Positions 4,949 to 59,168 of a DNA stretch of 64,000 bases are shown here, piece after piece. A program made the translations under genes and the position numbers. Numbering within the stretch: position 1 is the first letter of the stretch; each line of letters starts with the position of its first letter. The DNA is from Macrostomum lignano (taxonomy: Eukaryota): contig NIVC01002791.1 of assembly GCA_002269645.1 (NCBI GenBank), positions 1-64,000 on the forward strand, given 5' to 3'. The notes beneath the pieces are model-generated. The model saw only the letters and a list, made by a program, of their open reading frames with translations, was not told the DNA's origin and did no database searches.

Positions 4949-6050
4949 TTTTTAATTTTGACATGTCATACATGCCTATGACACAAAAAACCTAGCTGCT
5001 AAAGCATATTACTAGGCCTAAGGCTTTAGGTCTTATAGAACAAAACTAAATCTCAACGAAGGTCTAGTATAATATTATATGCTACGCCCAGGCCTATATG
5101 AAGACACAGTTACAAAGTCAAAATGAACCAACAAACTAACTAGGCTAATCCTCTTGAGATACATACCGCTATAAATTATACGGGCTCACTGGCTTTGGTA
5201 ATCTAAAATAACTAAATCTCTAAGGTTTGTATGCTTGAATGCTTGTCCATCTAAATATAATAAATCTCTAAATCGCTCTAATGTTAGTTAGGCCCTAGTT
5301 TGTTTGTGTTTGTTCATAACGCTCAAGTAAAAATACTAAAATTGATACTTTTTAAAACTGTCACAATAGTTTGGTCAGACTCTGTTACTTCAAGAAAACA
5401 AAGTTGATGCCCTAAATGACTGTCTTTTGATTTCAACTTTAGTTTTAGTAGCTCAAGCGTATTTTAAAACATTTTTTTAGAATTTCAATTTTACTGCTCT
5501 GCTCGTATATAATTACACCTATTAGCTCTTTTGTTTACGCTAGGTCGACGAGAAAATTTAAATAATTAATTCATGGTCTATTGATGAACTCCACTGGTTT
5601 CCAGTTATGCATTATTTCTCATTAGAATAGAAAAAGCACATGTACATACATAAACACGTCGTATTTTAATAAATGTAAGGAAAATGCTATATGCGCTGGT
5701 ACATGAATGGGCACAGGAATTTACTGCATCAGGCCAATTTGAACCATATACTTAGCTTCTAAGAGTGTTCTATATCTATATATGTGATGTACTTTAACGT
5801 ACCACATTTTAAACAACATATTACATGTTGTATGTATAGCCTGCATGTACACCGACAGGTCAATGTCCAAATTTTATGCCAACACATCACATGGGTTGCA
5901 TGAAGTACGTACAGTTATAAAAACATTTTGAAATGATATGAAATTTTCTTGTTCTTCGTGTAACAAGGAAACAACGAAACAAGGGTTTCCAACCACTGGT
6001 ATGCATGTTGTAAAAAAGCCGATCTGAACAATTAGCTCTCACGTTTCATT

Positions 6051-21618: not shown

Positions 21619-21634
21619 TAGTGTCCAGCAATTT

Positions 21635-21905
21635 TTTATTTTTTAGAGGCAGGGGCTGTGTGCACCTTGGCGCACTTTAAGCAACATTGTCACACAACCG
21701 GCGAGAGGCATTACTGCCCATTCCGCCGACTCCCCTGAGCAGGCACACAAGCGCGCGGATACGTACGCAGGCACACACTCACACAGGAGTGTACAGCGGC
21801 CCTAACTGTAAATATCGTTAGGCATGTTGTACACTTCACTGTGCCTTGGGGGTTGGGCCTCAAGGGCGTTAATCGCGACTGCACTTGGAATCGAGCCTGG
21901 GCCGC
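21635..21905 (-). mobile_element. SINE-like retroposon, copy A
   Basis: Aligns to 33008-33325. The minus strand ends in CCCCTGCCTCT + an A-rich tail and carries a B-box-like GGCTCGATTCC near its 5' end. Confidence 0.6.
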
Positions 21906-31255: not shown

Positions 31256-32442
31256 TCAATCTGTGGAGCCAAACACCAACCGATCCAGCCGAGAGTCAAT
31301 CAAGGTCAGGTGCTCCTGCAATGCCGAGGCGTCAGTCAGCACAGCGGCTGGCAGCTTGGCCAGTCTGTCCCAGCCTGACTCGAATCGCTTCACCTCCCGC
31401 AACAGGTGAGTCCAGCCCGACTCCCAGTAGAGGCGGGTGTCCCAGCACCTGGTTTGTATAAACCGCTTTTGTGAGTGTCGCATTACCACTTTTGTATCTG
31501 AATAACTCATTAGCTACCTGAATACCTCATTAGCTACCTGAATACCTCCTTAGCTACCTGGATACTTCATTAGCTACCTGAATAACCCATTAGCTTCCAG
31601 AATACCCCATTAGCTACCTTGAATACCTCATTAGCTACCTGAATACCTCATTAGCTACCTGAGTACCTCATTAGCTAACCGAATACCTCATTAGCTACCC
31701 GAATACCTCATTAGCTACTTGAATACCTCATTAGCTACCTGAGCACCTCATTAGCATACTAAACTAATGACAAGCAAGCAAACTCTCACCTAGCAACAGT
31801 ACCGTCAGCACGCAGAAAGTATCTCAACAACAGCAGAAAGCATTGGGGCATCGCTCTGAAGCGCAGGCACATCTGAGCGGTGCCGCTGTCGCCCAGCTCA
31901 TCCTCGTACAGCTGGGTCTCGCAGTAGAACAGAATTCGATCCCGCCTACGCAGCCGCTCCAGATTGATGGCATCGCCGGCAGCCGCTGGCTCCTCCTTCC
32001 AGCCGGAGCCCAGCAGGGTGCCGGAATAATCGCTGGCAAACGTCCAATCGTATGGCTTAGCAGATTCTTGAGCATATTCAAGCCGGGTGCTCAGCCACTG
32101 CTCGGACACAGCCAGTTTCAGGCTGCTAGAATGAGCATCAACTCGGCGCAAAGCATCGAGAGCGTTGAACTCTAATGAGCAGCCGGATTCGATGTGCTCA
32201 AGCCGGAGACAGTTGCGGTCGAACACCATATCAGGCAGGGCTGGCAATTCCAGTTCACTGCGCATTGCGGAGTAGCGGGGACCGTCCGATGGTAGAATAT
32301 GACTGCGCCTGGCATAGATGCGCCACGGGGGGTAGGATGACGTCATCTCCTCCTCGGCGGCATTGTTAGGGTTTGCAGATCCAACTGAAGCTGTGGCAGC
32401 CTGTGATGGGGCTGCAGTAGCTGGGGGCGGTTCAGATGCCAT
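31256..32442 (-). CDS. TIPRL: TIP41-like protein (PP2A-family regulator), 2 exons, 281 aa
   Basis: Exons 31790-32442 and 31256-31448 with a phase-2 GT-AG intron. Motifs LPDMVF, LEFNALDAL, KPYDWTF-SDY-GTL, LYEDEL-D-G and RFRAMPQCFLLLLRYFLR-DG...DTRLY are characteristic of TIP41. Confidence 0.95.
31500..31755. repeat. Intronic minisatellite, 20-bp unit CATTAGCTACCTGAATACCT
   Basis: About 12 copies fill most of the 341-bp TIPRL intron. Confidence 0.93.
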
Positions 32443-33007: not shown

Positions 33008-33325
33008 AATTTTTTTATTAGAGACAGGGGGGTTATGTGCACCCTGGCGCACTTTAAGCGACATAGGCACACAACTGGCGAGAGGCATTACTGCCCATTT
33101 CACTGACTCCCCTGAGCAGGCACACAAGCACGCGGATATATATGCAGGCACACTCACACAGGAGTGTACAGCAGCCCTAACTTTATTTTATCATTAGGCA
33201 TGTACACTTCACTGCACCTTGGAGGGTTGGCTCTCAAGGCCGTTAATTGCATGAGCAGAGCCAAGCCGAGATTCCAATTCAGCCCCAAATTAATGTGACT
33301 GCACTTGGAATTGAGCCTGGGTTGC
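33008..33325 (-). mobile_element. SINE-like retroposon, copy B (CpG-decayed, with an internal hairpin insert)
   Basis: Aligns with 21635-21905 and has the same A-rich tail. Many CG sites of copy A read TG/CA here. An extra ~35 bp is inserted at ~33255-33295. Confidence 0.6.
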
Positions 33326-33716
33326 TGGCACACCAGAGCAGCTGCGTTACTGCTGGGCTATGGCCCCCTAATAGACTTCCCAAACAAACCAAATAAAGAA
33401 ATGGAACCTACAAATAGGGGAAAGCAAAAGGAGAACCAGAAAAAGAAGGCAACAGCAACAAAAGAAACCAAAGAAAAAGAAAGAGCTTTAGAACTAATAT
33501 AATACTAGACAATAGTTCAGAGGAAGAAAGAATTCAATGGAAAGCCAGAGAAATTGAGCGAGATAAAGACAAAATTGAACAGAATAAAGGAGAAATAGAG
33601 GATAAATCAATAGACAATGAAAGAACTGAGCCAACTAAGATAGATATAACTGCATTAGAGCCAAATCAAAAAAGGAATAAGAATGAGAGCTTAACAAAGG
33701 CCTTGCTATAACCTAA

Positions 33717-43948: not shown

Positions 43949-45149
43949 CTTCCCCCGTCACCATCAAGGGCGAATTCCCCCGGTCGTCAGCAGTGAACAT
44001 CAAAGTGAAGAGCATCACCTGCTAGCTATCTGCGAAGATTGTGACATCAGCACCATCCCGGGTCTACAGCTGCGAAGCACTAAGCCGATTCGGTCACTGT
44101 GGATTACCTGGTCTCCGGCTGTTGAGTTTCTGATTGGTTGGGTGAGAGGCTACTTAGACTTGCTTGATTGGGTGATCCCCTATCTGTCCCCTAACTTAGT
44201 AGCTGGATTAGGCGCGCACTTTTGTTCAGCAGTGCTGTTATCGAGGCAGAAATAATTCAATAATACTGTTAGTAGTCTGAAACTTCAATTCAATCTGAAG
44301 TGTGAGGTGAACTAAGAAGAAGGTTAAATCTGACAGTTATCTTTATCGGTTTTATTTCTTTGCTCGCCGCGATGGCTCAGATGAGTAGCTAAGCTAGTAG
44401 GCGCCGGTCGCAGTGGACCAATGGCAAGGCAGTTCTCAGTCGATCAATCTATCAAATCAGTGAGCAAAACTGCTAACAGTGCAAAATCGGCGCTGGAGAT
44501 GTACTTCTGTGCGCTCTATATTCGCCAAGCGTCTCGGGTAATGATTCATGCGGTCTCTGAAGTTCGAGTTAGCCTAGCCTATCATCAGCCCTAGCCTATC
44601 ATCAGCGCTAGGAGAGGCTAGTTTATCGCGTTGAAGGCCAAGAGTACAACTTCTCGTATTTAGCAATGTAATAGTACATGTAGCTTGGTAATTTGGCCAC
44701 GCATCGCGCAGATTTGGAAGTGTCCGAAATCGTCCAAGTATTTTTCACTTTGTTAAATTGTTACACTTATTTGAGAAATTTCGCTCGCGCAACAGAATTG
44801 ATCAGACTGCAAGTCGCAGAGTTTGAATTTTGGATCGCGGCGGCCTGAAAAGTCTCATTCTGCTCAAAATGTTAAACTATCCTTAGCTAATGGCAAACTA
44901 TCCACATAGTCTGGTTAATTTGCTACCTCAATTAAAAGCTAGGTTAAACAATAGCACTAAAATTGAGTTGCATGACAAGCGCGCACTAGCAAAAGCAAGC
45001 ACGGCTAGAATGGGGATTAGCACAAGAGCTCAAGCATTTTGGAACAAGAGCGTATTGACACTGACGCAAGTACATGTATTTCACCTACATGTACCGTACG
45101 AACAATCATGGATTAGTGCCAGTATGCACACGAGTACATGTATGTTTGA

Positions 45150-46075
45150 CTTAGCTGCAGAGAGGGCATCATCCGGCGGATGCAGCGATCAGGAGCTAGG
45201 CGGAGGAGACCGCCCATTCCGCTAGCCTAGCTCTTGCGACCATGAATGACTTCCATCGAAGTGATGTCGCTCAGGGGGGCCGTCAGTCTCGCTTGCAGCG
45301 CGGTTCTCCTCACCGGCGGTGGGGAAAACTCAGCTAGCTGAGGTACCGGGTGCAGAGCATCGATATGCTCTCGGGCCTGCAAGCGTCGGAGGGTTTGGCC
45401 TGGGGTGAGTGAGTTTGAAGACCGGGTAGTGGCAGATAAATTGTTCTGCGTTTTACTACATGTACCTGCTGAGCGGCAGAAGAGCTTGGGGCACCGCGCA
45501 CCGCTCCTCAAGTACCTGGCCCTGAAGGAAGCGGTGGCGAAAGAAGCAGCCATGCATGCCCGGAGAGGGCCCATGTACATGTAAATGCTCTTAAGATCCC
45601 TGCGGTTGAGCCTAAGGAAGGCTCTACGCAGGGGAGACAGCAGCACGGGATTTCCTGCAATTTCGAGTGTCGATCGTGCCACCTGCGGAGATGCTCAGAG
45701 TCAGCCCAGAGCTTGGCGCGGGAGTTAATCACCGAGGCGCAGGGGTGGGAGCCCCCTGGGCCCGGTCCAGAAGCGCGCTGGCGGAGCCAGCCTTGCCGGG
45801 ATGGAAACCATAACATCGTGGGCCGGGATCCTTTTGAATTCCACCTGGTTGCCCAGCGCAAGTCCGTGGAGCCGGGCGTTGCAGTCCAGGACAGATCTGC
45901 AGTTGGTGGTGCTGCAGACGGCCAGAAGGACTGCTTGGCTGTCGGAGTGAAAAATAAATTTCTGACTGCAAGCTAAGCTGCCTTCGACGCAGCTCTGCCA
46001 CAGGAGCTGATGGCAAGCACCTCGCTCTGAAAAACACTGGAATTGAGTCCCAGTGCGCTGCTATTAGGTAGTTAA
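45150..46075 (-). mobile_element. 5'-truncated, frameshifted LINE remnant with RNase H (I/Loa/R1-type)
   Basis: Frameshifted translation gives SVFQSEVLAI and IFHSDSQAVLLAV...CNARLHGLALGNQVEFKRIPAH, which are non-LTR RNase H motifs (vFQAEvxAI, SDSQA, WiPgH). It continues into LSGH/RH...G...C and AEQFIC remnants of the C-terminal cysteine domain and ends CTGCAGCTAAGTCAA. Confidence 0.75.
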
Positions 46076-46366
46076 TAATACCTTTGCATGCTTAATATTT
46101 AACAAAACTTATCTCTACTTCTGCCGCTTACTGATCGCAAGTGGATCCACACGCAGCCGTGGAGTGGATTGAGCTGGACTAGTCAAGCGGACTAAAAAAA
46201 CGTATTTTACGCTGATTTGAAGAGCACTGGAAATTCATTGAAATTGAAGCATCGATATCTCAGCAACAGCTCAATATTTTGACAAGCGGTAAAGTACAGC
46301 TGGTGAAGAATTTCTTTACCTATTATCCAGTAAAATTACATGCGCCAAATTCATCGTTTTGAGGTA

Positions 46367-47011
46367 CAGTATGGCTCGGAAAGAAGTGCATGGAATTTTG
46401 GCGTAACTCCAGTAGTGGAATAAATGAAACTCCAGCATTTGAGCCTTGCAGACTTGCAGCCTTGCAGACTCCAATACTAGATTGATGGTCGATTTTAGCG
46501 TGTAGTTTAGTGCGACACTGCGACAATTTTATTATGCTCCAATGTTGGAGTTTTCTTATGCTCCAATGCTGGATTTATATCAGCCAGTATTAGAGTTTCG
46601 GCTTTGGCACCGGAAAAGTGCAAATAACTCTACTGGACGACCTTCTAACGCCCCGGAACCAGCGCCAATCGACTCAGGGGGCTGAAATTTATCAGAAAAT
46701 GTTGTTCGCATAGGCGCGAAAGCCACTCTGCAGAATGCCAAAAATTTGTATCCCGCCCCCCCCCCCCCTAGCTAGGTGCACTTGTCAAATTTACACCTGC
46801 TGCCGGTAAGATTCTGCAAGTAAACCGGCTGTGCTGCAACTTGCAACTAATCAAAACTACGCAAGCCGCTGAGAGCAGTGTCGCACTAAACTGCACGCTA
46901 AAATCGACCATCAATCTAGTATTGGAGTCTGCATGAGGCTCCAATGCTGGAGTTTCCTTTATATTCCACTACTGGAGTTATGCCAAATGCACTTATTTCC
47001 GAGCCATACTG
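46367..47011. mobile_element. Tc1/mariner-type MITE (645 bp)
   Basis: TA|CAGTATGGCTCGGAA ... TTCCGAGCCATACTG|TA, with imperfect inverted arms of about 150 bp (46367-46523 vs 46876-47011). Confidence 0.85.
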
Positions 47012-47339
47012 TAGTCCAGCTCAATCCACTCCACTCCAGTTGAACATAGAAAAATTTTTCAAGGATCTTTTGAAACGCAAGCACGGAAGTGTTAGCGCAA
47101 CGCTGCCCAGAATCAAGAGAATGGGCATGACAGAAGCAGCTGCAAAGAACTCTCATAGTGGAATTCAGTGGAAGTATGAGCAGGAAAGTTTGTTTCAATG
47201 GTTCGACCGAGCTGACAAATTTTATTTGTGTGAACGTAGGCACTAATGTAGTAAATAGAGGCTTTTTCCTCGGTAGAAATTCGAGCAATGGATAGAATTT
47301 ACACGTAGCTCGTCAAAACTGACAGTCTCTTCAATTCAT

Positions 47340-47476
47340 CGGTGACATCATGCTGACAACATGCGGATGGCGAGTGATCTGGTGGCGAAGCTTGAAGTTG
47401 TAGTCGTGAAGTTGAAGAGGCAACGCCTCCTCGCTGCGTCCGGATGCTCGGAACCCCTGCAGCTAAGTCAAGTAAC
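47340..47476 (+). mobile_element. Possible further LINE 3'-end fragment
   Basis: Ends in CCGGATG...CTGCAGCTAAGTCAAGTA, like 45150 (minus) and 35250. Confidence 0.35.
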
Positions 47477-48944
47477 CCTCTACCATTGTACACAACTCTC
47501 AAATCTGCGCAATAAATACATGTACATGTAGATAGTGCATGTGCACTTGCCGAGCACAGAAGGCACAACTTCTCCCGATATCCCGATATTGTGCTTCTTA
47601 ATTCAAATGCGTATTTAAGAAATTAATAAAATGCAATCCGTGTTTCCTGTTCAATTTATTTTCAGCAGTACAGCATTTTGCACCCCCTCATAATTTGGTG
47701 CCCATCGACTCATGTTGGCCTCTCAAACTTGGACCGCCGGCCCCTCCCAAAATGAAATTCTAGATCCGCCACTGCTCGTACATGATAAGATTGACTGAAT
47801 TTACTATTACGAGTACTAATATACCTATACTAATTATAGATCATTTGTCTCAATCGGATGGAAACAACTTACATATGCAAATGTCCATGTACCAGGGAAG
47901 TCATATGGCTATTTTAAAAGTGACAGGATGTCAGGCTATGGAAGCACGAGACTTTTCCACAGAGGCTTTTCTCACCGAGCTTTCCTCTCATTTTTAACCA
48001 ACAGGTGCTGCCGAGACAGAGGGCGAGAAGGAAAAAGGGAGGCCTGGAGGGGCAGACAAACTATTGAGACTACTGTAATGTAAAATCATATACTTTATAC
48101 CTCTCGCCCTATGGCTTTGCCTCCCACAATTCTTTGTGACCGTCACGTGACCATATTTGTGTCATCATCAAAAGAGAATTAGATAAAACAGGAATTTTTC
48201 AGGACAGGACAGAGTGAATTATCGTAAAAAGCATAGGTAAAAGCAATGAAGTCTGTTTTAGTTTGAGGCACATGTTTACAATATACAGTTAAGTATATAC
48301 TCGATCGTTTCGAGAGAAAATAAGCATCCATTACTAACAATTTAGAAATTCTGGACAAATCTTAGATTCAGTAGTATATTGTGATTGTGATTACTTTAAT
48401 CACATAGCATTAAGACAGTGAGCAGTTCTCGCTTATTGGCTAGGTGTTGAAGAGCAACGATATTGCATCATTTTGATTAGTTTTCTGCCATTTTCTGACA
48501 ACAAATTTCGAGTGTATTATCAAATAAACACGAAACTAGACAGAACACAAAAACCGGTAACTCAAACCAGGACTTTCCAATCATTTATGGACTTTATTAC
48601 AAGCTGATGTCTTGGATGACAGGTAGGATATACTAGTTAGGATATTTTTAGCAATTTATTGCAATTCATGTAAGCATCTTGAAAAAAGCTTTCATGTTAT
48701 TGTTTAAGCTTTTAGCATGAACGAAAAAACACAAACTAACAGAAGGCAAATATCAATTTCCTCAAATAATTTTTTACAACGGAAAGCAAATCAAACAAGG
48801 AAACAAAATTCACTACAAAAGCATTATATTCCACAAGCAAGGCTTCAGATCAGACTAAGAAGTAACCAAAAATACGAGTAAATGCAAATGTTGAGGAAGA
48901 AATTTATCCTTTAAACGTCCTCTAAATTCATGGCCATACTCGCA

Positions 48945-49430
48945 CCAGATAGCAAGACAGGGTACCCGTTGGATTTAGATTTTTTAAAGTAGGCATAAAA
49001 GGTGAAGAGTTTTGCACCTTCTACGCCACTTTCGCCTCTCATGCCTATTTTGTTCCACTCGTGTGCACTGCGTGTTCACCTGAATGCCTCTGCAGGGTCA
49101 AAAGGTAAATTTTGACGTGAGAACTTCCGTGCACCTGCTGTGCCTCACTTGTGAGCCTACTGTTCATATTTTGTGCACCTCCAAGGTCCCTTATGCACCA
49201 TTACTGCCCATACCGCCGCAACCAATCAAAATTGACGATTCCCCTACTGCCTGATGACTTCACCGATTTGTACACCTTTCATGCCTCTTTTCAAAAATAT
49301 TGGTCACATTTCGGCATAAAAGGTGCACTCAGGTGCATTTCTTGAAACACGCACGAAATAGGCCACTAAAGTGCCTCTTTTGTGCACTTCGCTCACCTTT
49401 TATGCGTACGCAGGTGCATAAATTTTAAAC
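48945..49430. other. Putative 3' subterminal region of the KDZ element
   Basis: Dense GTGCAC/TGCCT/AGGCA motifs downstream of the transposase. CCAGATAGCAA at 48945 is only a candidate terminus; no TSD was confirmed. Confidence 0.3.
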
Positions 49431-49570
49431 GTTTAAGAAGCGCTAAGAAGTGCATATAGTGGCATCGGTGAAATACGATTTTTATTTAGAACCGGATACA
49501 AAAAATTACAAGATATTGGAACTTAAGGAGCTAATTGCAGCAGAGTTCGGCCAAAAAGGCGAGATCGAAA

Positions 49571-52500
49571 TCACTCAAAATTATCGACAGCTTCATCATC
49601 CTCCTCGTCATCGTCGGTCGACGAATCATTGTCGTCATTCAGAAGATTGATCTCATTTGGGAGCAAGCTAGTCTCTGAAATGGATTAGGGTTAGGGATGA
49701 AGCTGTTTGCTTATTACGAATATAGTGAGTACTATGACAGAAACTCTAAGGAGCTGATATTTATATTTATATTCCGATTAATGATGTTAAAAAATTATTG
49801 ACTTAAAATATATATTAAATGAAGACCCACCGCCAGAGTAGGTATCTCGATTAGAAAGAAGACTAGACAGAACACTTTCTTCTGAAGGAAATAATGCAAT
49901 ATGCTGTCGAATCAAATGCTCGATCCCGTTAGCTCGTAGCAAGCGCAGACTTGAGAGGGGTCGGTTCGAAAATTGACTGACTTCTGAACGCGTGCGCAGT
50001 AGAGCAGTTGCGAAAAAGTTCGAAGCACGCCGGACTTCCACTCGCACCAGACTAGCCTCTTCTTCAATTCGCAAGTAGAGGTGAAGCAACTTCACAGCCT
50101 GACGCTTCCGTGACCTATCAGTACTGGGGGAGCCAAGACCCCCATCGTTTAGCAAAGATGGCTGGTGAATTACGCGTGTAGGGAACCTTTCATGGAATTT
50201 GCGAACTAGCGCTTCGCCTTTTTTATTCAACTTGCGAAGAGTCTTATTCAATGCTTTGTTCATCTTCTGGCCACTCTCCGTCACAGCGTGCTCGATTAAG
50301 AATCGTCGATCGCAGGAAATCTGCTGTAGTTGAAAAAATGCATCCTCTGCGGGATCTTTCCTCGAATGACTTGCTGCGTCAGCCGCCGAGTACTGTTCAA
50401 GCAGCTCCTTCTCCCAAACGCTGCAGATGGCTAGAAACGCCGAGAGATCGCCTAAATGCATGTACAAAGTTGAGAAATAAAAAATAATGCGCATGAGAAT
50501 CTAAGTACGAGAAAACTTCTGAGATAGTTCTTTATAGTGCCTAGAAAATAATTTTAAATATCTGAATACTTACCATCTATACTTATTTTTGAACGGAATT
50601 CGCTGACCTCAGAGTAGAACCGCTGAAGGCTCTGTTTTGCAACTTTTTCCCGGCTAAAAAGCCAGACAGCTGAAAAATGATGACATTAGATCTTCTTATA
50701 AAATATCAAGGATCGTCATAGTCTTACAAATTTAAATTTATTGTCTTACAAATGTTGTTGATTCGGCCAAAGTTGATCGAATCTGCCCAATAGTTCAAGA
50801 AATCACGCCTATTCGTGTGCGTCATCTCTTTTAGCTGAGGTCCAAAGCGCCGAGCAGTTGACCAGATGCGCTCGCAGCTCTCACCGTCTGTGAGGCCAGC
50901 TCCAGCGACAGAGCGTATTCCGAACTTCAGTTGGCAGCTCTCTTTATGCCCATAGGCGTGAAATGCCGGGATTGCAAATGCGACGTTTGAATCATTGAAG
51001 CGTCCTGACAGTTTACAAGCGATATCGTAGGATACGATGATCTTCTGATCGGGTAAGCTGTCTTCGATTGCTTTGTTTACCATTGCGGAAGAATATACCA
51101 GCCTGGGGTACATTGGGTCGGAGCAGGTATGTCTAGTTTTTTATTATCGGCATTTGACCAAAACAGCAAAAATAATATTTGATTACAACTGCCCCGATTA
51201 AGCCAGATGTACAACCGACAGATGCGGCTGTTTAGTCCAAAGACTGAATTGTTACAAGTGGATCAGAAATCGAACCCCTGACCTTCCAGAGTATGACGCT
51301 CTTACCACACTAGGCTAGAACTCTTTGACATTAGTCCTTTAATATTATTGTAAAAAACGAACCCAAATGCTATGTACTGTAACAATTTTACTCGTAGAAA
51401 ACTTTACAGTACACAGATGCACTTAAAGGGCCAATGGAAAAATATTTATATACCTTTCTCCAGGAGTTACAACATCGGCCAGGTAGGTCACACCGGAGTG
51501 TCGGCAAGAACCACAAAACAAACCGAAAACGTCCAACTTCTGACGATCCGATGCAGAGACAAGACCCTGACCACGACCAGCAGTGAAGTTAGGGCAATGC
51601 GAGACGTTCGGCTCCTGATTTTGGGTGACGTCGACGTCAACGAAGAATCCGGAGGCAGCGGGAATCACCGCTTTTCCAGCCTGCTTTCGGTGCCGAAGAC
51701 CGAAGCAGGCATCCAACATTAAAAAAGTTGGAGCACTTCCGGCACTAGCACTATCGCTATCGCTGCGAGCCTGTAGAGTGTTCAGATATAAAAATAACGT
51801 GATTTTCGTTAGTATAGAATATTAGCTTTTCTCGCTATCACAAAACATAACAGAAAAATTCTTACAACAAAACAGGCCGGACAGGAAGCTTTTTGGCCCC
51901 ATCGAACATCCTGGAGAAGTCTACGGAAAGCTCGGAAACAGCCTGACGTGTTTAGAACGCGGAAAAGGTCAATCTAAAAATTAGGAAAGTGGCGTGAAGA
52001 TGTTACTACAATTACTTCAATAATTATTAAATTATCAAAAAAGTGCGAAATCGACAAACTGATCAAGACAGCACCTGCTGATACTGCCACATAATAATAC
52101 ACACTCAGAAACAAAATAACTATAATTCTCATTACTAACTTTTGACATGTTTACACAAAACAGACTTTCATCGTTTAAAAGGTACTGCTAAATTATTATC
52201 TTGCTCGTTAAGGCCCTTCAACTAAACCATTTATACAGACTTTCAATTTTCTTTCACCGTGATCACACTACTGTATTAAACACAATAACAAGTTAAAGAC
52301 AATAACTAGCTAGTCGGATTGAAAAAGCAAAAAATTGCCTTCTTACTCGTGTGCGTGAACCGAGCCACAATGAACTTCTAGAATTCTGCAGTGCGTTGCA
52401 CAGAGACGATAGAGAAGCAGTGCATCGAGATGAAACGGAGTCAAGCAGAAGAAGCAGTCCGATGTGCACGGCTATGATCTCTCTCACAGAATCAATCAAA

Positions 52501-53558
52501 GGCTGCGTTATCCAAAATCCGTGCGCTAGTAGGGTACTGTGTAAATCAGAACACTCACATACTTCAACTAACAAAACAATATCTTCACCTGAAATTTACA
52601 AAAAGATAACAAATTAGATTATGTAAAATACGAATGCTGAAAAGTTTTTAGAATAATCGGAACAGTAAGTGATATGCGAAAAAGAACTTTAAACAACAAC
52701 TAACCCTCTTCTGTCACTCCTAGAACGCGTCTAGAATGAACTGCAGAGCAGTCGCAAGCGTTTCTTCTGGCAATACGAACAGGAGATGTGACTGTCTCGA
52801 AGCATGATCCCTGCATAGCGTATAAATTTTTTTATAATCAAAATTTTCCTAAATCTTAAATTAGTTACTGTATCTTAAGTCGTTAACTTACATTCCATTT
52901 GCGAACAACGTGAGGTGGATTGTGCGAATGTACATTTGATAGGCACTTCTCACAAACTTGGAGCAGGTTACACTTTTCGCAGCGAAAATTACCCCTAACA
53001 TCATGACATACTGAACAGACACCATCGCTGATAAAGAAGGAAGCAAAGCCATCAGATAGTCGATGAACAAGGCGACTCCATTCTTCCTCCTCCATTTCAC
53101 GTCGAATGTCATATCGACTCGGAGCGTGGTGCAAAATATCATCCTCCACACTTTCCACAGTCTCTTGCCCAGAAGGCTCATCGTCTAAATTAGCTTTAGA
53201 GGAAGCACATCTAAAAAAGAAAAATATGTGCCTAAATTTATAACCTACCTAATAAGGATAAACAACTAAAAGAATAAGTAATATACTAACAATAAATAAA
53301 TAACAAACAGACCTTTTATAAAAAAGTACTATTTAACATGGAAACCACAAAAGTACATCTCCAAAAAATCAAGTTTTGTTAGATTTAATAGACATTAAAT
53401 ATGTAAAATTTGTGGGTATGTATTGTACTTAGGACATGAATATAATATTAATATCAATCTTACCTTCGACTATGAGAACTAGAAGCCAGTGGTTCATGTG
53501 AAGTGCGACGTTTAGGTTGATGAAATTCAACTTCTCTTTGAACAGAGCGTTTAGGCAT
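49571..53558 (-). CDS. CxC-domain + KDZ (Kyakuja-Dileera-Zisupton) transposase, 10 exons, ~786 aa, apparently intact
   Basis: Exons 53464-53558, 52892-53210, 52705-52810, 52347-52588, 51866-51973, 51454-51770, 50750-51102, 50574-50669, 49831-50451 and 49571-49674 are all GT-AG, phase-consistent and stop-free. Motifs: CSVC..CEKC..CEKC..H..P.H...WNG (CxC), VCEC..LLAHGFW, CPAC, LDACFGL, LDVFGLF..SCRH, GER, YDIACK, FAIPAFHAYGH..CQ, GLTDGESCERIWS and an acidic C-terminal tail. Confidence 0.9.
51175..51325 (-). mobile_element. tRNA-derived SINE inside a KDZ transposase intron
   Basis: A box TAGCCTAGTGTGG (51305-51317) and B box GGTTCGATT (51268-51276) at tRNA-like spacing, followed by a non-tRNA body. 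Confidence 0.55.
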
Positions 53559-53669
53559 TTGCTAAAAAAGATAGAAAAAAATACAAATTTCAGCTAAGTT
53601 GCAATAATTAAAAACTCTTCTTTAGGACATACATATTATTAGAACATTAGAAGATACATAGAAGGCTCT

Positions 53670-54790
53670 TGCCTTCTCTGGCAGAGCAGGGCAGAAGAGC
53701 AGGTGGAAAAGTGAGACAAAAGAGCAGAGGGCAGAGTTGGGGGCAGAGCAGGGCGGGCAGAGTCGAGGGCAGAGAAGGGGGCAGAGACGCAGAGCTGAGG
53801 AGCAGGGGAAGATCAGGGGGCAAAGCAGGGAGGTAGAGCAGGGGCAGAAGTGCAGGGAGCAGGGGGCAGGGCAGGGGCAGAGTAAGGGGCAGAAAACCAG
53901 GGCCAAAGCAGGGTACAGCTGAGCAGGGGCAAAGTGGGACATAAGAGCAGAGGGCAGAGTTGAGGCAGAGCAGGGGCAGAAAAGCAGGGCAGCCAGGGCA
54001 GAAGAGCAGGGGGAAGAGCAAGGGGCAGAGCTGCAATGTAGGTGCAGGCCAGAGGCCAGAGCTGCAATGTAGGTGCAAGGCAGAGGGCAGAGCTGCAATG
54101 TAGGTGCAGAGCAGAGGGCAGAGCAGGGGTTAGAGCATGGCAAAGTATAGGGTAGAAGAGCAGGGGTAGAGCAAGGGGCAGGGCTGCAGAGCAGGGCAGA
54201 GCGTGAGCAAGGGGCAAAGCTGCAGAGCAGGGGCAGAGTAGCAGAGCAAAAGAGTAGCAGCAGAGGGCAGAGCAGGGGTTAGAGCATGGTAGAATATGGG
54301 ACAGAAGAGCAGGGGCAGAAAAAGGCCTAGCACTGCAAAGCAATGCTTGCTTTGCTTAGCAGTGCCTAACATTGGCAGAGCAAGGGGCATAGCAGGGGCA
54401 GAAGACCAGCAGGCAAAGTGGGAATAAAAGAGCAAGGGGCAAAGCAGGACAAAAGAGTAGATAGCGGAATAGGGGGCAGAGCAGGGGCAGAACAACTTGA
54501 ACAAGGGCAGAGCAAGGAGGCAGAACAAAGGCAAGGCAAAGGGCAGAATAGGGGGCAGAGCAGGAAGGCAAAGTAAGGAGGCATATTAAAAAGCAGAAAA
54601 GCAAGCGTAGAATAAGGAATACTGCAGGGGACAGAAAAGCAAGGGTCAAAGCAAGGGTTAGAACAAAAGATTAAGGGGTAAAGCAAAAGATAATACTAAA
54701 AGCAAGGGGTAGAACAAAGGGCAAAGTAGGGGGATAAAAACAAATAGAGCAAATAGCCATAAGGCACCATAAGGCAAAATAGAAAGCAAA
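53670..54790. repeat. Purine-rich GGGCAGAGCA-type degenerate repeat upstream of the KDZ start codon
   Basis: Short ~10-bp motifs, three ~33-bp AGCTGCAATGTAGGTGCA units (54027-54115) and a palindrome at 54325-54370. The motif decays G>A toward 54790. Confidence 0.85.
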
Positions 54791-57006
54791 AAACAAGGAA
54801 TTTAATAAGGAAATATATATATTCAAATAAATTTTATTATATTATGAGTATAAAAGGTCTATTCTGGTATTCAGTAAAAATTCTAGGCTTAGCTTAATTT
54901 TCATTTAGTTTTGAAAAGTTAATCCTAGTCTAATACTCTAGTTTGCTATCCTAGTCCTAGAAAATAGAAATATATAGGATAGGGCAAGCTTCAAAGTCTT
55001 TTAGAACCAAATAAAAGTCATTAAAAGGTAAAGTACTAATCTAAAGTCCTTTTGTTTTGGCTTTGGTTTTATTCTATTTCTATTTATTTTAAAAATACCT
55101 TGGTGCTATACCTAGGCTACATGTCTATTTAGCTTTGTTCACAGACAAAGATATATTTTTTAGTATTTTAGAATAGTAATAAATAATGAAACAAAATTTG
55201 GCTTAACCAAGCAAAGTCAGCAATCAATAATTATATTGATATAATGTGGTCAATATAAGCTTTAGGCTAGGCCTAATAACTACATCATATTTCTATTAAT
55301 AGTAGCTGTCAGTTGATTTAGTATATTTGGATTATTGATATAAATAATTTAGAATACTTCATTTAGACTTTTAAAACAAGGTATACCTTTAAACAATGCC
55401 ATATACAACAATTCTAACTAGGCTTAGATTATACAATACAATATCATCATTGTTTTCGTGTTACTGTTACCATATTTTGCCTAACAATATCATATAATAA
55501 CATCACTATAGTATAGGCCTACTATGATATCTAACTAACTAAGCCTTTTTGCTGCACTTTATCTCTATCTCAATATTTGTGATATATTCCAGCAAGGCAT
55601 GCTGCTGTATATTATTGATGCTAGTGGATACAAATTAAAATTCTGCCAAAAATTTCAAGATCGTGTGTCAACTTTTAGGTCAATTTAAAATGCATTGTTG
55701 AGCCTAATTAGGCTGTCCGAGCATGCACACTGAACATAGTGCATGTTCGCAAAAGCCTTATTGGCGGCTATCGTGCATGTACGATTCAGTCTAAGAGTTG
55801 TCAACAGGGCTGAATTTATTTACTAAATTAGTAACTTTTTGAGATACATTGATTTAAAATTGCTTAGCAACACTGATTAGACATCGCTTTATCGTTGACT
55901 GAAATTGTTTCGATCGTAGCAGCCTAAAAGAAGATGCTGGTTTAAAAAATGCTTCGATTTACTTTTTACGCATGTCTCAGCTTTAAAATGACACCTCAGC
56001 CACCACAAAAGACTGCGCTGATGATGCTGATATATTCAACACTAAACATTGATTTTGCGCAAGCTCGATCACATTCGGAAACTTTTAGATTGTTTTGATA
56101 TTCGATATTTGATTTGCTGTGTTTTTGTTTTTCGTCTGAGCGTGAGGTAGGGCTGGCTGGTCTGTCTCGGGACAACATTTGTGCAGTGACCAAGATATGT
56201 TGTCTGTGAGGGTGTTTATGAGAGGGGTGTTGTGAAAGTGTAAGCTATAGTGTCGTTTTACGTCTTTGTTTTTCTGTCGGTGTCGAGCGTACGAATGTGC
56301 GCTGTCGTGATGGGGACGAAGGTGTGAATAGGCTCATGGACGTGGCTGTCGGCGTCAGTTCGTCGGTCGTTGCAGCAGGACATCAATGTGGTGCAGAATG
56401 TATACATGTATAGCGGCCAGCGAAGCCCCCTATGTACTAGCTTATACGAGCTACTGTATATGAGATAACAATCAGATAAGGCACATTGCAAGGAATTGCC
56501 CGTCGGGAAACTTCAGCGGAGGTCCTGGGAAGGGGTCGAGCCAGGGCCTCTGATCCAAGAAGCCGAACCTCCCCTAATTGGTGAGCTGGCCTAGCAGGAA
56601 GTCGAACGTCCGAGTCTGACAAATGCACCGACGATGATAACGAGAAACTGGTCCTTAGTTCCAGGTGGGGGGCTTTGGATTGTAGCAGGCCCAAGCCAAG
56701 ATTCCAATTTAGCCCAAAATTAATGACAGCACTTGAAGTCGAGCATGGCCGAACCGCTGTTAAACTAATTGGAACTAATTAATCGGCTTCGTTCGTCTCA
56801 GACAGAAACGAGCCCTCAGCCGCGACTGCCTAGAAACAGTTGTGAGGTGTGTTACTTATGATGTTGGCTGGCTGGGTATAGCGATACCTTATAGGGTTTA
56901 AATCAGTTCAAATAGAAACAATTGCGCGCGCCTCCTACATCAAAGTAGAAAGCGCTCGTCCGACGTGCTACTGCAGGTGACTAAATAATTGCACAGAGCC
57001 CTTTAA

Positions 57007-59168
57007 CAGTAGAAAGACCATGGGGGTGTATTTCAAATACACACATTTTTCTTTTGTCTAGATCTCCGAAAATATTCAACCAATTGCCATCAAAATCCAG
57101 AACGCGGGCTAAAATTTTCCGCTCTATTCGATGAAGCAACTCCGAGAATCACGAAAATCGGCATCGTCGAGATATTCAACGATTCTCCTCGGGGTGTCCG
57201 GTGGCAAAAACCACCAACATTGGCAAATTTTTTCTGTTCACAAAATCTCATCTTGAAACCACGTCGGCTCAGGAAACTATGCATATCAGTCGTAAAGGCC
57301 TTTCTTCTCAGCATCCCAGGAACCAGGGTCCCCTTCAGCACCGTCTGGAGCATCGGCGGCGACCGTCAGGACCTTCAACAAAAGCACCCGATCGGCATCG
57401 CAGAGACGGCTGCGTTCCCAAAACTGAAATGGAAGAATCCTCTTCTGCATGCAGCATTCAGTCAGTAGACATAATCGGTGAATGAAATGGACGACGGCGA
57501 CCCTCTAGGTTGACCTGTAGACATACAAGCGACCTTCGGGACCTTCAACGGAGTGCCACCACGCGGCCCCGACTAGCTGGCACCCCCAACATCGTGATTT
57601 TTCTGTCAAGGCACCAAACCAGGCATGTCTGCATATTATACTATGCTTTTGCACCGTGTTAAATTGGAGAGTTACAGATTTAACTGGCCCAAAGCGGGCC
57701 GAAACGTGATGTTGCTGTCCACCATGCATCACGACAGACAATTGCTTCCCAATGGCAAGCCTGTAGCAATAGGCTCGTACTACAATTCTACCAAGAGTGG
57801 CACGGACACCTGCAACAGGATGTTCCGCACATCCGACTGCAAGCGAAAGTCCGACTCATGTGAGAAGGCAATCTTCGGCGGCATACTCAACATAGCAGCT
57901 GTGAATGCCGCTGCTATCTGGAGACTGGCGCACCCAGAGCTCTGCGCCTCGCCGAACTATCGCAACGAGTTCCAGCGCAAGGCAGCTGCGCAACTTCTGC
58001 AACCTCTGATCGAGGAGCGCTCGCAATCGGCCGCTCTTCTTCAAAATCTGTCCAATCATCACAGGCTGATGTTCCAGCTCGCAGGTTGTCGAATCAACGA
58101 CGAGAAAATGAAGGAACAGGCACGCGAAGCGGCGGCTGTGGTGTCAGTTGGTGGCAGAAAGCGCTGTGCAACATGCGCGAGACAAAAGTCAAAGGATGAG
58201 AAGCGTGCCTTGAGTGCGACAACAAGGAAGTGTTGCGTGTGTGACGAAGGAATTTGCCGAAGACACACTGCAATAGAAGAGACAGTGAGTCACCATTACT
58301 GCCCCAAATTAAATAGTGACAATTGACTCAGCCTTTGTGTCTATGTGTCAGTGTTTAGATCCTTCTGCTTTGAATTTGCTGTACTATCATTTTTGACATG
58401 CTGTAATATCATTTTTGACCTGCTGTAATATCATTTTTGACAAATTAAATATATTTTATATTATTCAGTCGCCAGTTAAATCTGTAACTCTCCAATTTAA
58501 CACGGTGCAAAAGCATAGTATAATATGCAGACATGCCTGGTATGGTGCCTTGACAGAAAAATCACGATGTTGGGGGTGCCAGCTAGTCGGGGCCGCGTGG
58601 TGGCACTCCGTTGAAGGTCCCGAAGGTCGCTTGTATGTCTACAGGTCAACCTAGAGGGTCGCCGTCGTCCATTTCATTCACCGATTATGTCTACTGACTG
58701 AATGCTGCATGCAGAAGAGGATTCTTCCATTTCAGTTTTGGGAACGCAGCCGTCTCTGCGATGCCGATCGGGTGCTTTTGTTGAAGGTCCTGACGGTCGC
58801 CGCCGATGCTCCAGACGGTGATGAAGGGGACCCTGGTTCCTGGGATGCTGAGAAGAAAGGCCTCTCCGACAGATGGACCCAGATTATTGAGCCAATATAG
58901 ATTCACCATAAAGGTTTATACAGTGTAGTGTTGGTTGTCCTTGCCACCAGTTTCTTCGACAAGAATCGTTGAATATCTCGACGATGCTGACGTCGGATGA
59001 CTTTAAAAGTTAATTCGTTGGAAAGAGGGGGAAATTTTGATCCAAATGGTGGACTTTTACGAAAATCGGTTACTCGGTTTGCGAGCTATGGTGAAATTGG
59101 TTGTGTGTATTTGTAATACACCCCCATGGTCTTTCCCCATGGGGAAAAATAGCGTGATCTTTCTACTG
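57007..59168. mobile_element. Non-autonomous fold-back piggyBac element (2.16 kb)
   Basis: TTAA TSD (57003-57006, 59169-59172), TIR CAGTAGAAAGA / TCTTTCTACTG, a subterminal inverted repeat (57013-57045 vs 59103-59135) and an internal inverted repeat (57296-57688 vs 58471-58863). Confidence 0.9.
57625..58326 (+). pseudogene. C-terminal fragment of a piggyBac transposase, including the Cys-rich domain
   Basis: PKAGRNVMLLSTMH, GKP, YYNSTKSGTD, ILNIAAVNA and RKRCATC...RKCCVCDEGICRRH match piggyBac motifs. The N-terminal two-thirds is missing. Confidence 0.9.

Follow-up and report, generated by a model that had tools for sequence, protein, structure and literature searches.

The closest described systems for the gene considered here are the Kyakuja-Dileera-Zisupton (KDZ) transposons. 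Zisupton/KDZ elements with 18-31 exons have been described in Pristionchus, and multi-exon KDZ relatives in lancelets, sea stars and mussels have already been noted (PMC9297572). Zisupton is bounded by terminal inverted repeats (TIRs) and 8-bp target-site duplications (TSDs), and Dileera by 8-bp TSDs; Kyakuja has no TIRs, and its insertions show CA..TG ends and 7-bp TSDs (PMC12730594). The gene analyzed in this study lies between positions 53558 and 49571 on the minus strand of a 64,000-nucleotide (nt) stretch of the genome of the flatworm Macrostomum lignano (contig NIVC01002791.1, positions 1 to 64,000; hereafter, the window), and, judging from its sequence, it is an intact KDZ DDE transposase gene that is transcribed according to its transcript-derived annotation. 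The gene is already catalogued, is uncharacterized and belongs to a known kind; the new point of our analysis is that six of its nine intron positions are common to cnidarian relatives, and most of these also to amphioxus.

Results

The gene and its product

The minus strand of the window between 49000 and 54200 was read and translated in three frames, and ten exons were then spliced. The model rebuilt in this way from the window sequence spans 53558-49571 and yields a 2361-nt coding sequence (CDS) for 786 amino acids (aa) with 0 internal stops; all of the introns (9/9) are of the GT...AG type, and their lengths range from 80 to 373 nt. The Pfam KDZ profile (PF18758) matches aa 305-504 of the product with E=1.6e-36 and 126.5 bits (cut-off, 26.6), covering positions 3-215 of the 217 in the profile. 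The initial annotation had proposed an intact, stop-free ten-exon gene of about 786 aa belonging to the KDZ superfamily, and both parts of this proposal are borne out, the former by the rebuilt model with its nine GT-AG introns and its match to GenBank PAA55188.1, and the latter by the profile search. The features of the gene and of its immediate ends are listed below in the direction of transcription.

53562..53563, minus strand: AG acceptor (ttttttAG, followed by CAA ATG) directly 5' of the annotated CDS start; probable spliced-leader trans-splice site
53464..53558, minus strand: exon 1, with the ATG at 53558; aa 1-32, basic N-terminus
52892..53210, minus strand: exon 2, which holds the ZZ/B-box-like zinc finger C97-H132 (53017-52910)
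52705..52810, minus strand: exon 3 of the spliced model
52347..52588, minus strand: exon 4, with the C184-E-C186 'CxC' motif (52559-52551) inside a divergent CxC1/CxC2-like cysteine cluster
51866..51973, minus strand: exon 5, with C285-P-A-C288 at 51883-51872
51454..51770, minus strand: exon 6, encoding the N-terminal half of the KDZ catalytic core, with the first catalytic Asp, D310, at 51713-51711
51103..51453, minus strand: intron 6 (351 nt), with a tRNA-promoter-like stretch at ~51330-51260
50750..51102, minus strand: exon 7, encoding the C-terminal half of the KDZ core, with D422 at 51026-51024
50960-50934, minus strand: His/Cys insert H444-C452 in exon 7, within the KDZ core
50888-50880 and 50873-50871, minus strand: D468-G-E470 and E473, respectively, in exon 7, within the KDZ core
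50574..50669, minus strand: exon 8 of the spliced model
49831..50451, minus strand: exon 9, long helical C-terminal region with the conserved columns G606-Q607 and R673/E676/E677
49571..49674, minus strand: exon 10, acidic tail, with the TGA stop at 49573-49571
49481..49486, minus strand: AATAAA, candidate poly(A) signal read from the sequence, ~85 nt past the stop
48992..49406, no strand assigned: six degenerate copies of a 16-nt motif (GGCATAAAAGGTGCAC) in both orientations, just past the poly(A) signal of the KDZ gene and 3' of the gene

An alignment of ten KDZ proteins (the window protein with two M. lignano paralogues, two proteins from fungi and five from cnidarians, amphioxus and sea urchin) showed collinearity that begins at the first zinc finger and extends to the C-terminal helices, and every one of its invariant columns (31/31) is intact in the window protein. 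The invariant residues include C109, C184-x-C186 and C285-P-x-C288 on the N-terminal side of the core; D310, C349, C379, G394-E395, Y421-D422, C425, H444 and H448 within the core; and L466-T-D-G-E470 and E473-R-x-W476 in its C-terminal part. The motifs quoted in the initial annotation, CPAC, LDACFGL, YDIAC, FH-x-x-GH-x-x-x-C and DGESCERIWS, are all present, and their key residues are likewise conserved: D310 (LDACFGL), D422 (YDIAC), and E470 and E473 (DGESCERIWS) are invariant among both 10 and 14 KDZ proteins, and the core Cys/His cluster of C425, H444, H448 and C452 (FHAYGHKESC), together with the CPxC just ahead of the core, is invariant or nearly so, with C452 being retained in ≥90% of the aligned sequences.

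The finger at aa 97-132 (CxxC-x8-CxxC-x5-CxxC-x4-H-x5-H) weakly resembles ZZ/B-box domains, ZZ-type Pfam models giving E values of ~0.01-0.04. Among the Pfam CxC models, the best match was to CxC1 (E=0.028, 15 bits), which falls under the cut-off of 26.9. The aligned region of the cnidarian (Dendronephthya) and amphioxus (Branchiostoma) proteins, however, matches both CxC1 and CxC2 significantly, and C159, C184 and C186 are conserved in the region of the window protein that is collinear with these CxC-positive homologues; we therefore consider the CxC domain to be probably present but divergent. The previously claimed CxC zinc-binding N-terminus has the invariant C184/C186 pair and the collinearity with CxC-positive homologues in its favor, but it was not confirmed by any Pfam CxC model, none of which reached its threshold. 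Neither SWIM nor Peptidase_C48 produced a Pfam match at E≤1 in the window protein, which agrees with the earlier statement that the SWIM and SUMO-protease domains of fish Zisupton are absent. The fish Zisupton proteins are far longer and contain SWIM and Ulp1/SUMO-protease domains.

The AlphaFold2 model that we used was made from the UniProt form of the protein (A0A1I8GP41, described below); its mean predicted local distance difference test (pLDDT) score is 71.7, and that of the catalytic core is 85-93. D310 sits on strand beta-1 in this model, and the core follows the order beta-1 (with the Asp), beta-2, beta-3, alpha-1, beta-4 (with the second Asp just after it), alpha-2, beta-5, the His/Cys insert and a helix that starts at the Glu; this predicted order fits that expected of RNase-H-like DDE enzymes. 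When the full-length model was compared with the PDB by using Foldseek, no match was obtained beyond noise from the long helices. The modelled core of a paralogue gave weak matches (E 0.015-0.5), and the top ones were all RNase-H-fold transposases or integrases, namely Mos1, ISCth4, Metnase, Sleeping Beauty and retroviral integrases. No close solved structure was found in the PDB by either sequence search or Foldseek.

The protein is not new to the databases. GenBank PAA55188.1 (BOX15_Mlig032550g1, 787 aa) consists of a leading Gln followed by exactly the 786-aa model, and it maps to 49571-53561 of NIVC01002791.1 (GCA_002269645.1, Mlig_3_7), which are also the window coordinates; the entry bears only the name 'hypothetical protein' and is flagged as 5'-partial. 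UniProt A0A1I8GP41, the best database match, represents the same gene and is 100% identical across the overlap, but it lacks exon 1 and has a different exon 9-10 junction, at which an internal donor in exon 9 removes 51 aa. The removed segment ('LFPSE') is conserved in the paralogue Mlig019149, and we therefore regard the long exon 9 as the better model. Given these two entries, the suggestion that the gene might be undescribed has to be withdrawn, although a literature search with the gene identifier retrieved no paper that names it.

The GenBank annotation of the assembly is a genome-guided transcriptome in which reads containing the spliced leader or poly(A) defined the transcript ends, and any transcript that overlapped a repeat annotation was taken out before submission (PMC5730564). 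Because the annotation is transcriptome-based, the splice junctions of the gene should rest on RNA evidence, and because its transcript survived the repeat filter, the locus was presumably not classed as a repeat. The annotated 5'-partial CDS begins at 53561 (CAA), and the preceding genomic codon is TAG, the AG of which makes a good acceptor. The spliced leader of M. lignano, CGGTCTCTTACTGCGAAGACTCAATTTATTGCATG, terminates with ATG (PMC8629364), and this ATG would be in frame with the CAA-ATG of the gene. A 5'-partial CDS that starts exactly after an AG points to a transcript model starting at 53561, as the pipeline yields at spliced-leader sites; from the sequence and the annotation together, we conclude that the transcript is probably trans-spliced to the spliced leader.

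Intron positions shared with other animals

The exon structures of relatives were resolved by requiring that their spliced translations reproduce the annotated proteins, and the introns were then mapped on the alignment. Introns 2-8 of the window gene occupy the same column and phase in one or both of the M. lignano paralogues Mlig019149 and Mlig024767, the proteins of which are 36-40% identical to the window protein. Introns 2-7 also coincide, in column and phase, with introns of the cnidarians Dendronephthya and/or Actinostola, introns 3 and 4 being within one column in some of the sequences. Branchiostoma shares introns 4, 6 and 7, and intron 5 only nearly: the 'CPxC-P-K' residue that precedes it is the same, but a gap in the alignment intervenes. 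The cnidarian and Branchiostoma relatives contain 14-15 introns in all, as compared with 9 in the window gene; for 9 and 14 introns distributed over ~2400 column-phase sites, ~0.05 coincidences would be expected by chance. A KDZ gene of the fungus Mycena, used as a control, has 10 introns, of which 0 are at positions of the window gene.

Because introns 2-7 are common to cnidarians, and most of them to amphioxus, intron richness is an old trait of this animal KDZ lineage, and it therefore offers no evidence on whether the window locus is domesticated or mobile. The shared positions support a long-term maintenance of the gene structure, but they need not mean domestication, since DNA transposons carry their introns along. 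The initial annotation had read the nine introns as a sign of long-term vertical maintenance or of domestication; the count was right and the maintenance of the structure is supported, but the number of introns cannot separate domestication from mobility in this case.

Copy number and the other KDZ genes of the genome

Among the annotated proteins of the one assembly searched, a single contig carries the protein, and the 90%-identity cluster to which it belongs holds this gene only. The next relative is ~50% identical, and nothing falls between ~57% and 100% in either protein library. Self-BLAST revealed no second copy within the window. No inverted repeat brackets the gene, either in the self-BLAST of the window or in an inverted-repeat scan of 45000-58500, where the best inverted pairs were chance-level 14-23-mers or parts of other repeats; no TSD was found, the ends of an element without TIRs not being definable from a single copy. 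The idea that the gene represents an active family thus gained no support from this locus, and the gene is most likely a resident single-copy gene that does not belong to a family amplifying at present.

Two other KDZ genes of M. lignano were compared in their genomic context. Mlig019149 occurs in two copies, which lie in a block of >23 kb with 99.6-99.9% identity (NIVC01000126 vs NIVC01000227) and are not discrete insertions; their CDSs are 100% identical and hence too similar for an estimate of the ratio of non-synonymous to synonymous substitutions (dN/dS). The left breakpoint of this block is sharp, near position 5002 in the comparison of the two loci (L001 and L002), where CATCAGTGTCACAATC begins, and its right side ends in an assembly gap. 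The second gene, Mlig001681, encodes an identical 809-aa protein on 5 contigs (its loci include NIVC01001431, NIVC01000103, NIVC01003704 and NIVC01000306), with gene identifiers up to g20. This protein has a KDZ domain and, according to the names in the source, a B-box/CxC-type N-terminus, but it is 26% identical to the window protein, and its gene contains a single intron at a position other than those of the window gene. A sharp left junction, at which CAGTTTATGGCCGCC (CAGTTTATGGCC) begins, abuts different flanks in three loci; the gene forms part of a repeated unit that exceeds 20 kb and contains a tandem array of 5 kb, and the right end lies beyond the 10-kb flank. Judging from these sequences, Mlig001681 appears to have been amplified recently, unlike the window gene and its intron-rich paralogues, and is a candidate for a large KDZ element with recent activity. 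An expressed 748-aa KDZ relative was also found on an intron-less Logan contig.

Surroundings of the gene

The initial annotation had placed a short interspersed nuclear element (SINE) inside an intron. Only A- and B-box-like strings are present in intron 6, the B-box-like one being GGTTCGATTTC at 51266-51276; the intron gave no tRNA call by ARAGORN, no Rfam match and no cloverleaf fold, and BLAST against ~150 kb of M. lignano DNA revealed no other copy, so that the SINE is unconfirmed by all four checks. The 16-nt motif on the 3' side of the gene has 9 matches in the window, as compared with 0.5 expected, and six of the nine are in 48992-49406. No counterpart cluster was detected 5' of the gene, and the motif is absent from the paralogue loci; the cluster could be a set of binding sites or a small repeat that has decayed, or it could have arisen by chance.

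Upstream of the gene, a degenerate minisatellite at 53680-54700 starts ~120 nt from the KDZ start; it is purine-rich (CT-rich on the gene strand), is composed of 12-36-nt units and gives rise to long spurious open reading frames (ORFs). At 57598-58323 on the plus strand, a stop-free stretch of 242 codons, in which a 233-aa ORF starts with the ATG at 57625, is similar to the C-terminus of piggyBac-type transposases (16 bits with Pfam DDE_Tnp_1_7, under the cut-off of 22.4), and a perfect 30-nt inverted repeat (57659-57688 / 58471-58500) has one arm inside this ORF and the other 3' of it. By its sequence, this stretch, which lies 4 kb upstream of the KDZ gene, is probably what remains of a degraded element of the piggyBac type.

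On the other side of the gene, a nested inverted repeat occupies 46159-47034: its arms at 46365-46521 and 46875-47013 show an overall complementarity of 82%, which rises to 98% over 59 nt, and its outer arms (46159-46181 and 47012-47034) are perfect over 23 nt. In sequence, it looks like a miniature inverted-repeat transposable element or a foldback element. An exon for a TIP41-like protein (Pfam TIP41, E=3.7e-43) at 31786-32442 on the minus strand belongs to an ordinary host gene ~17 kb from the KDZ gene. Further minisatellite arrays are located at 16.6-17.0, 18.7-19.2, 20.0-20.4, 21.1-21.7, 24.1-25.8, 28.2-29.0 and 40.5-41.7 kb, and they yield repetitive pseudo-ORFs of ≤475 aa on both strands, which fits the published content of 15% simple/tandem repeats in this genome. 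An interspersed repeat of ~360 nt, ~90% identical between copies, occurs twice in the window (33010-33367 and 21633-21876); the same repeat is present in the sixth intron of Mlig019149 (17173-17531 of L001, on NIVC01000126, and 16828-17190 of L002, on NIVC01000227).

Discussion

Our preferred interpretation, to which we would assign a probability of roughly 0.5, is that the window contains a resident single-copy transposase gene that is kept under selection and that we infer to have been immobilized or domesticated. The encoded protein would comprise, in order, a ZZ/B-box-like finger, a divergent CxC cluster, the CPxC, an RNase-H-like core, a helical C-terminal region and an acidic tail. By analogy with the family, the zinc modules would bind DNA, and a predicted triad of D310, D422 and E470 (or E473), in which the putative His/Cys zinc insert separates the second Asp from the Glu, would hold two metal ions; family, motifs and predicted topology suggest that DNA could thereby be cut and rejoined by an enzyme that would be catalytically active. 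The gene would be derived from an old animal KDZ lineage with an exon-intron structure that predates the split between cnidarians and bilaterians, and at this locus it behaves like a resident, single-copy gene: it is spliced and probably trans-spliced, it seems not to have been flagged as a repeat, and it has no recognizable transposon ends. Long-term maintenance or domestication is, if anything, favored.

Several observations weigh against this interpretation. M. lignano contains at least six further KDZ lineages (Mlig019149, Mlig024767, Mlig007768, A0A1I8HMS9, A0A1I8GH28 and Mlig001681), and several KDZ lineages are also found in one octocoral, a pattern more reminiscent of diversifying transposons than of one domesticated orthologue. 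Outside M. lignano, the protein libraries searched yielded no flatworm orthologue, which makes the distribution patchy; other Macrostomum genomes exist (PMC10468722). The absence of TIRs is weak evidence, because Kyakuja has none either. An intact catalytic triad with intact zinc ligands is what would be expected of an autonomous transposase, the neighborhood is gene-poor and repeat-rich, and the motif cluster on the 3' side could represent subterminal binding sites. An alternative that we regard as somewhat less probable but as a serious contender is that the gene belongs to a still-autonomous, low-copy KDZ DNA transposon, the introns of which travel with the element and the ends of which, for example if they are Kyakuja-like, are unrecognizable from one copy. 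The full-length ORF is transcribed with all of its catalytic and zinc residues in place, which speaks for such an element, but it is present at a single locus whose 90% cluster contains this gene alone, and its transcript passed the filter against annotated repeats. The genome houses many divergent KDZ lineages, at least one of which is clearly multicopy, and multi-exon KDZ/Zisupton elements with recent activity occur in Pristionchus (PMC9297572); the demonstrably multicopy KDZ family of M. lignano, however, has a different, one-intron structure, and the paralogue copies examined lie in a duplicated block of >23 kb and are not discrete insertions. The lack of TIRs has its precedent in Kyakuja (PMC12730594), a motif cluster in both orientations lies beside the 3' end, and the setting is rich in repeats, with the piggyBac-like remnant 4 kb away, but the 5' side has neither a matching motif cluster nor an inverted repeat.

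The interpretation as a resident gene can also be given a stronger and more specific form, in which co-option of a KDZ transposase preceded the split between cnidarians and bilaterians; the gene would since have been inherited vertically, introns included, and would now work for the host, for example by binding or cleaving DNA in the germline or stem cells. Six of the nine introns shared with cnidarians, four with amphioxus (one of them offset by a gap) and none with the fungal relative would suit such a history, as would the homology that is collinear over the whole protein, including the C-terminal helical region, the low copy number, the host-like splicing and the probable trans-splicing to the spliced leader. 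Each species, however, has several paralogues and no one-to-one orthologues, identity to the cnidarian and deuterostome proteins is just 23-30%, no orthologue was detected in other flatworms, DNA transposons keep their introns too, and horizontal transfer among animals would yield the same pattern; hence, we judge this form to be unlikely. It is equally doubtful that the window gene, its M. lignano paralogues and the intron-sharing CxC-KDZ genes of cnidarians and deuterostomes all descend from one KDZ-derived gene that animals have passed on vertically from a time before cnidarians and bilaterians diverged, and together constitute an old, unrecognized, still catalytically intact domesticated family comparable in kind to RAG1 or PGBD5 and not a collection of transposons. 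That the gene is a dead relic, a transposase fossil with neither function nor mobility and a frame that is open by chance, is highly improbable. Its single copy, its lack of recognizable ends and the absence of any paper naming it would be consistent with a relic, but neutral decay would not be expected to leave a frame of 2361 nt open over 10 exons, with nine canonical introns and 31 of 31 invariant residues; three more paralogues with 33-40% identity also keep full-length frames, two of them with the same introns, and the gene is included in a transcript-derived annotation.

The gene itself is ordinary, being one more uncharacterized, deposited animal KDZ transposase. The introns that it shares with cnidarians and amphioxus, but not with the fungal relative examined, mark out a lineage of animal KDZ genes whose structure is very old, and many introns in such a gene should not be taken on their own as a sign of domestication. 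M. lignano combines two kinds of KDZ gene, one low-copy and intron-rich, as in the window, and one multicopy and nearly intronless, as represented by Mlig001681. Since transgenesis and RNA interference are feasible in this species, it provides a practical system for asking whether some animal KDZ genes became host genes. We consider the cross-phylum sharing of introns and the contrast with the multicopy KDZ family of the same genome to be the points worth following.

Comparison with known systems

An exhaustive protein search returned 1952 clusters at E≤0.001. The initial annotation had described KDZ transposases as established chiefly in fungi, oomycetes and fish; outside M. lignano, the proteins nearest to that of the window come from cnidarians, amphioxus, sea urchin, scallop and fish (cavefish), and multi-exon KDZ genes of metazoans have been published (PMC9297572), so that this view proved too narrow. 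Zisupton, which occurs in fish, diplogastrid nematodes and fungi, has the same Pfam KDZ catalytic domain as the window protein and likewise a multi-exon transposase gene (PMC9297572), but neither its TIRs nor its 8-bp TSDs were seen around the window gene. Kyakuja and Dileera, which are fungal and often accompanied by TET/JBP genes, show the same order as the window protein, with an N-terminal cysteine cluster followed by the KDZ core and no SWIM or protease domain, and Kyakuja is without TIRs, as the window locus appears to be; they differ in that no TET/JBP gene lies near the window gene, within 10 kb of which no other gene is annotated. The fungal KDZ proteins sampled are 21-24% identical to the window protein, the fungal relative examined has other intron positions, and the fungal relative P0013 carries Peptidase_C48, unlike the window protein. 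In Mycena galericulata (JARKIA010000105.1), two KDZ genes are adjacent and convergent, one with Peptidase_C48 and the other with CxC2, a pair typical of fungal KDZ clusters.

The proteins of Dendronephthya (LOC114540544), Actinostola (QZH41_017010), Branchiostoma (LOC109462576) and Lytechinus (LOC121428660) are 23-30% identical to the window protein and collinear with it throughout. The cysteine clusters of these cnidarian and deuterostome CxC2-CxC1-KDZ proteins reach the Pfam CxC1/CxC2 thresholds, whereas the flatworm cluster does not, and the proteins are likewise uncharacterized. The M. lignano paralogues Mlig019149 and Mlig024767 are 36-40% identical to the window protein over the full length and have the same zinc modules and catalytic motifs and a low copy number; they differ in that their first intron is placed elsewhere and a ninth intron is absent, and Mlig024767 is annotated with a short C-terminus.

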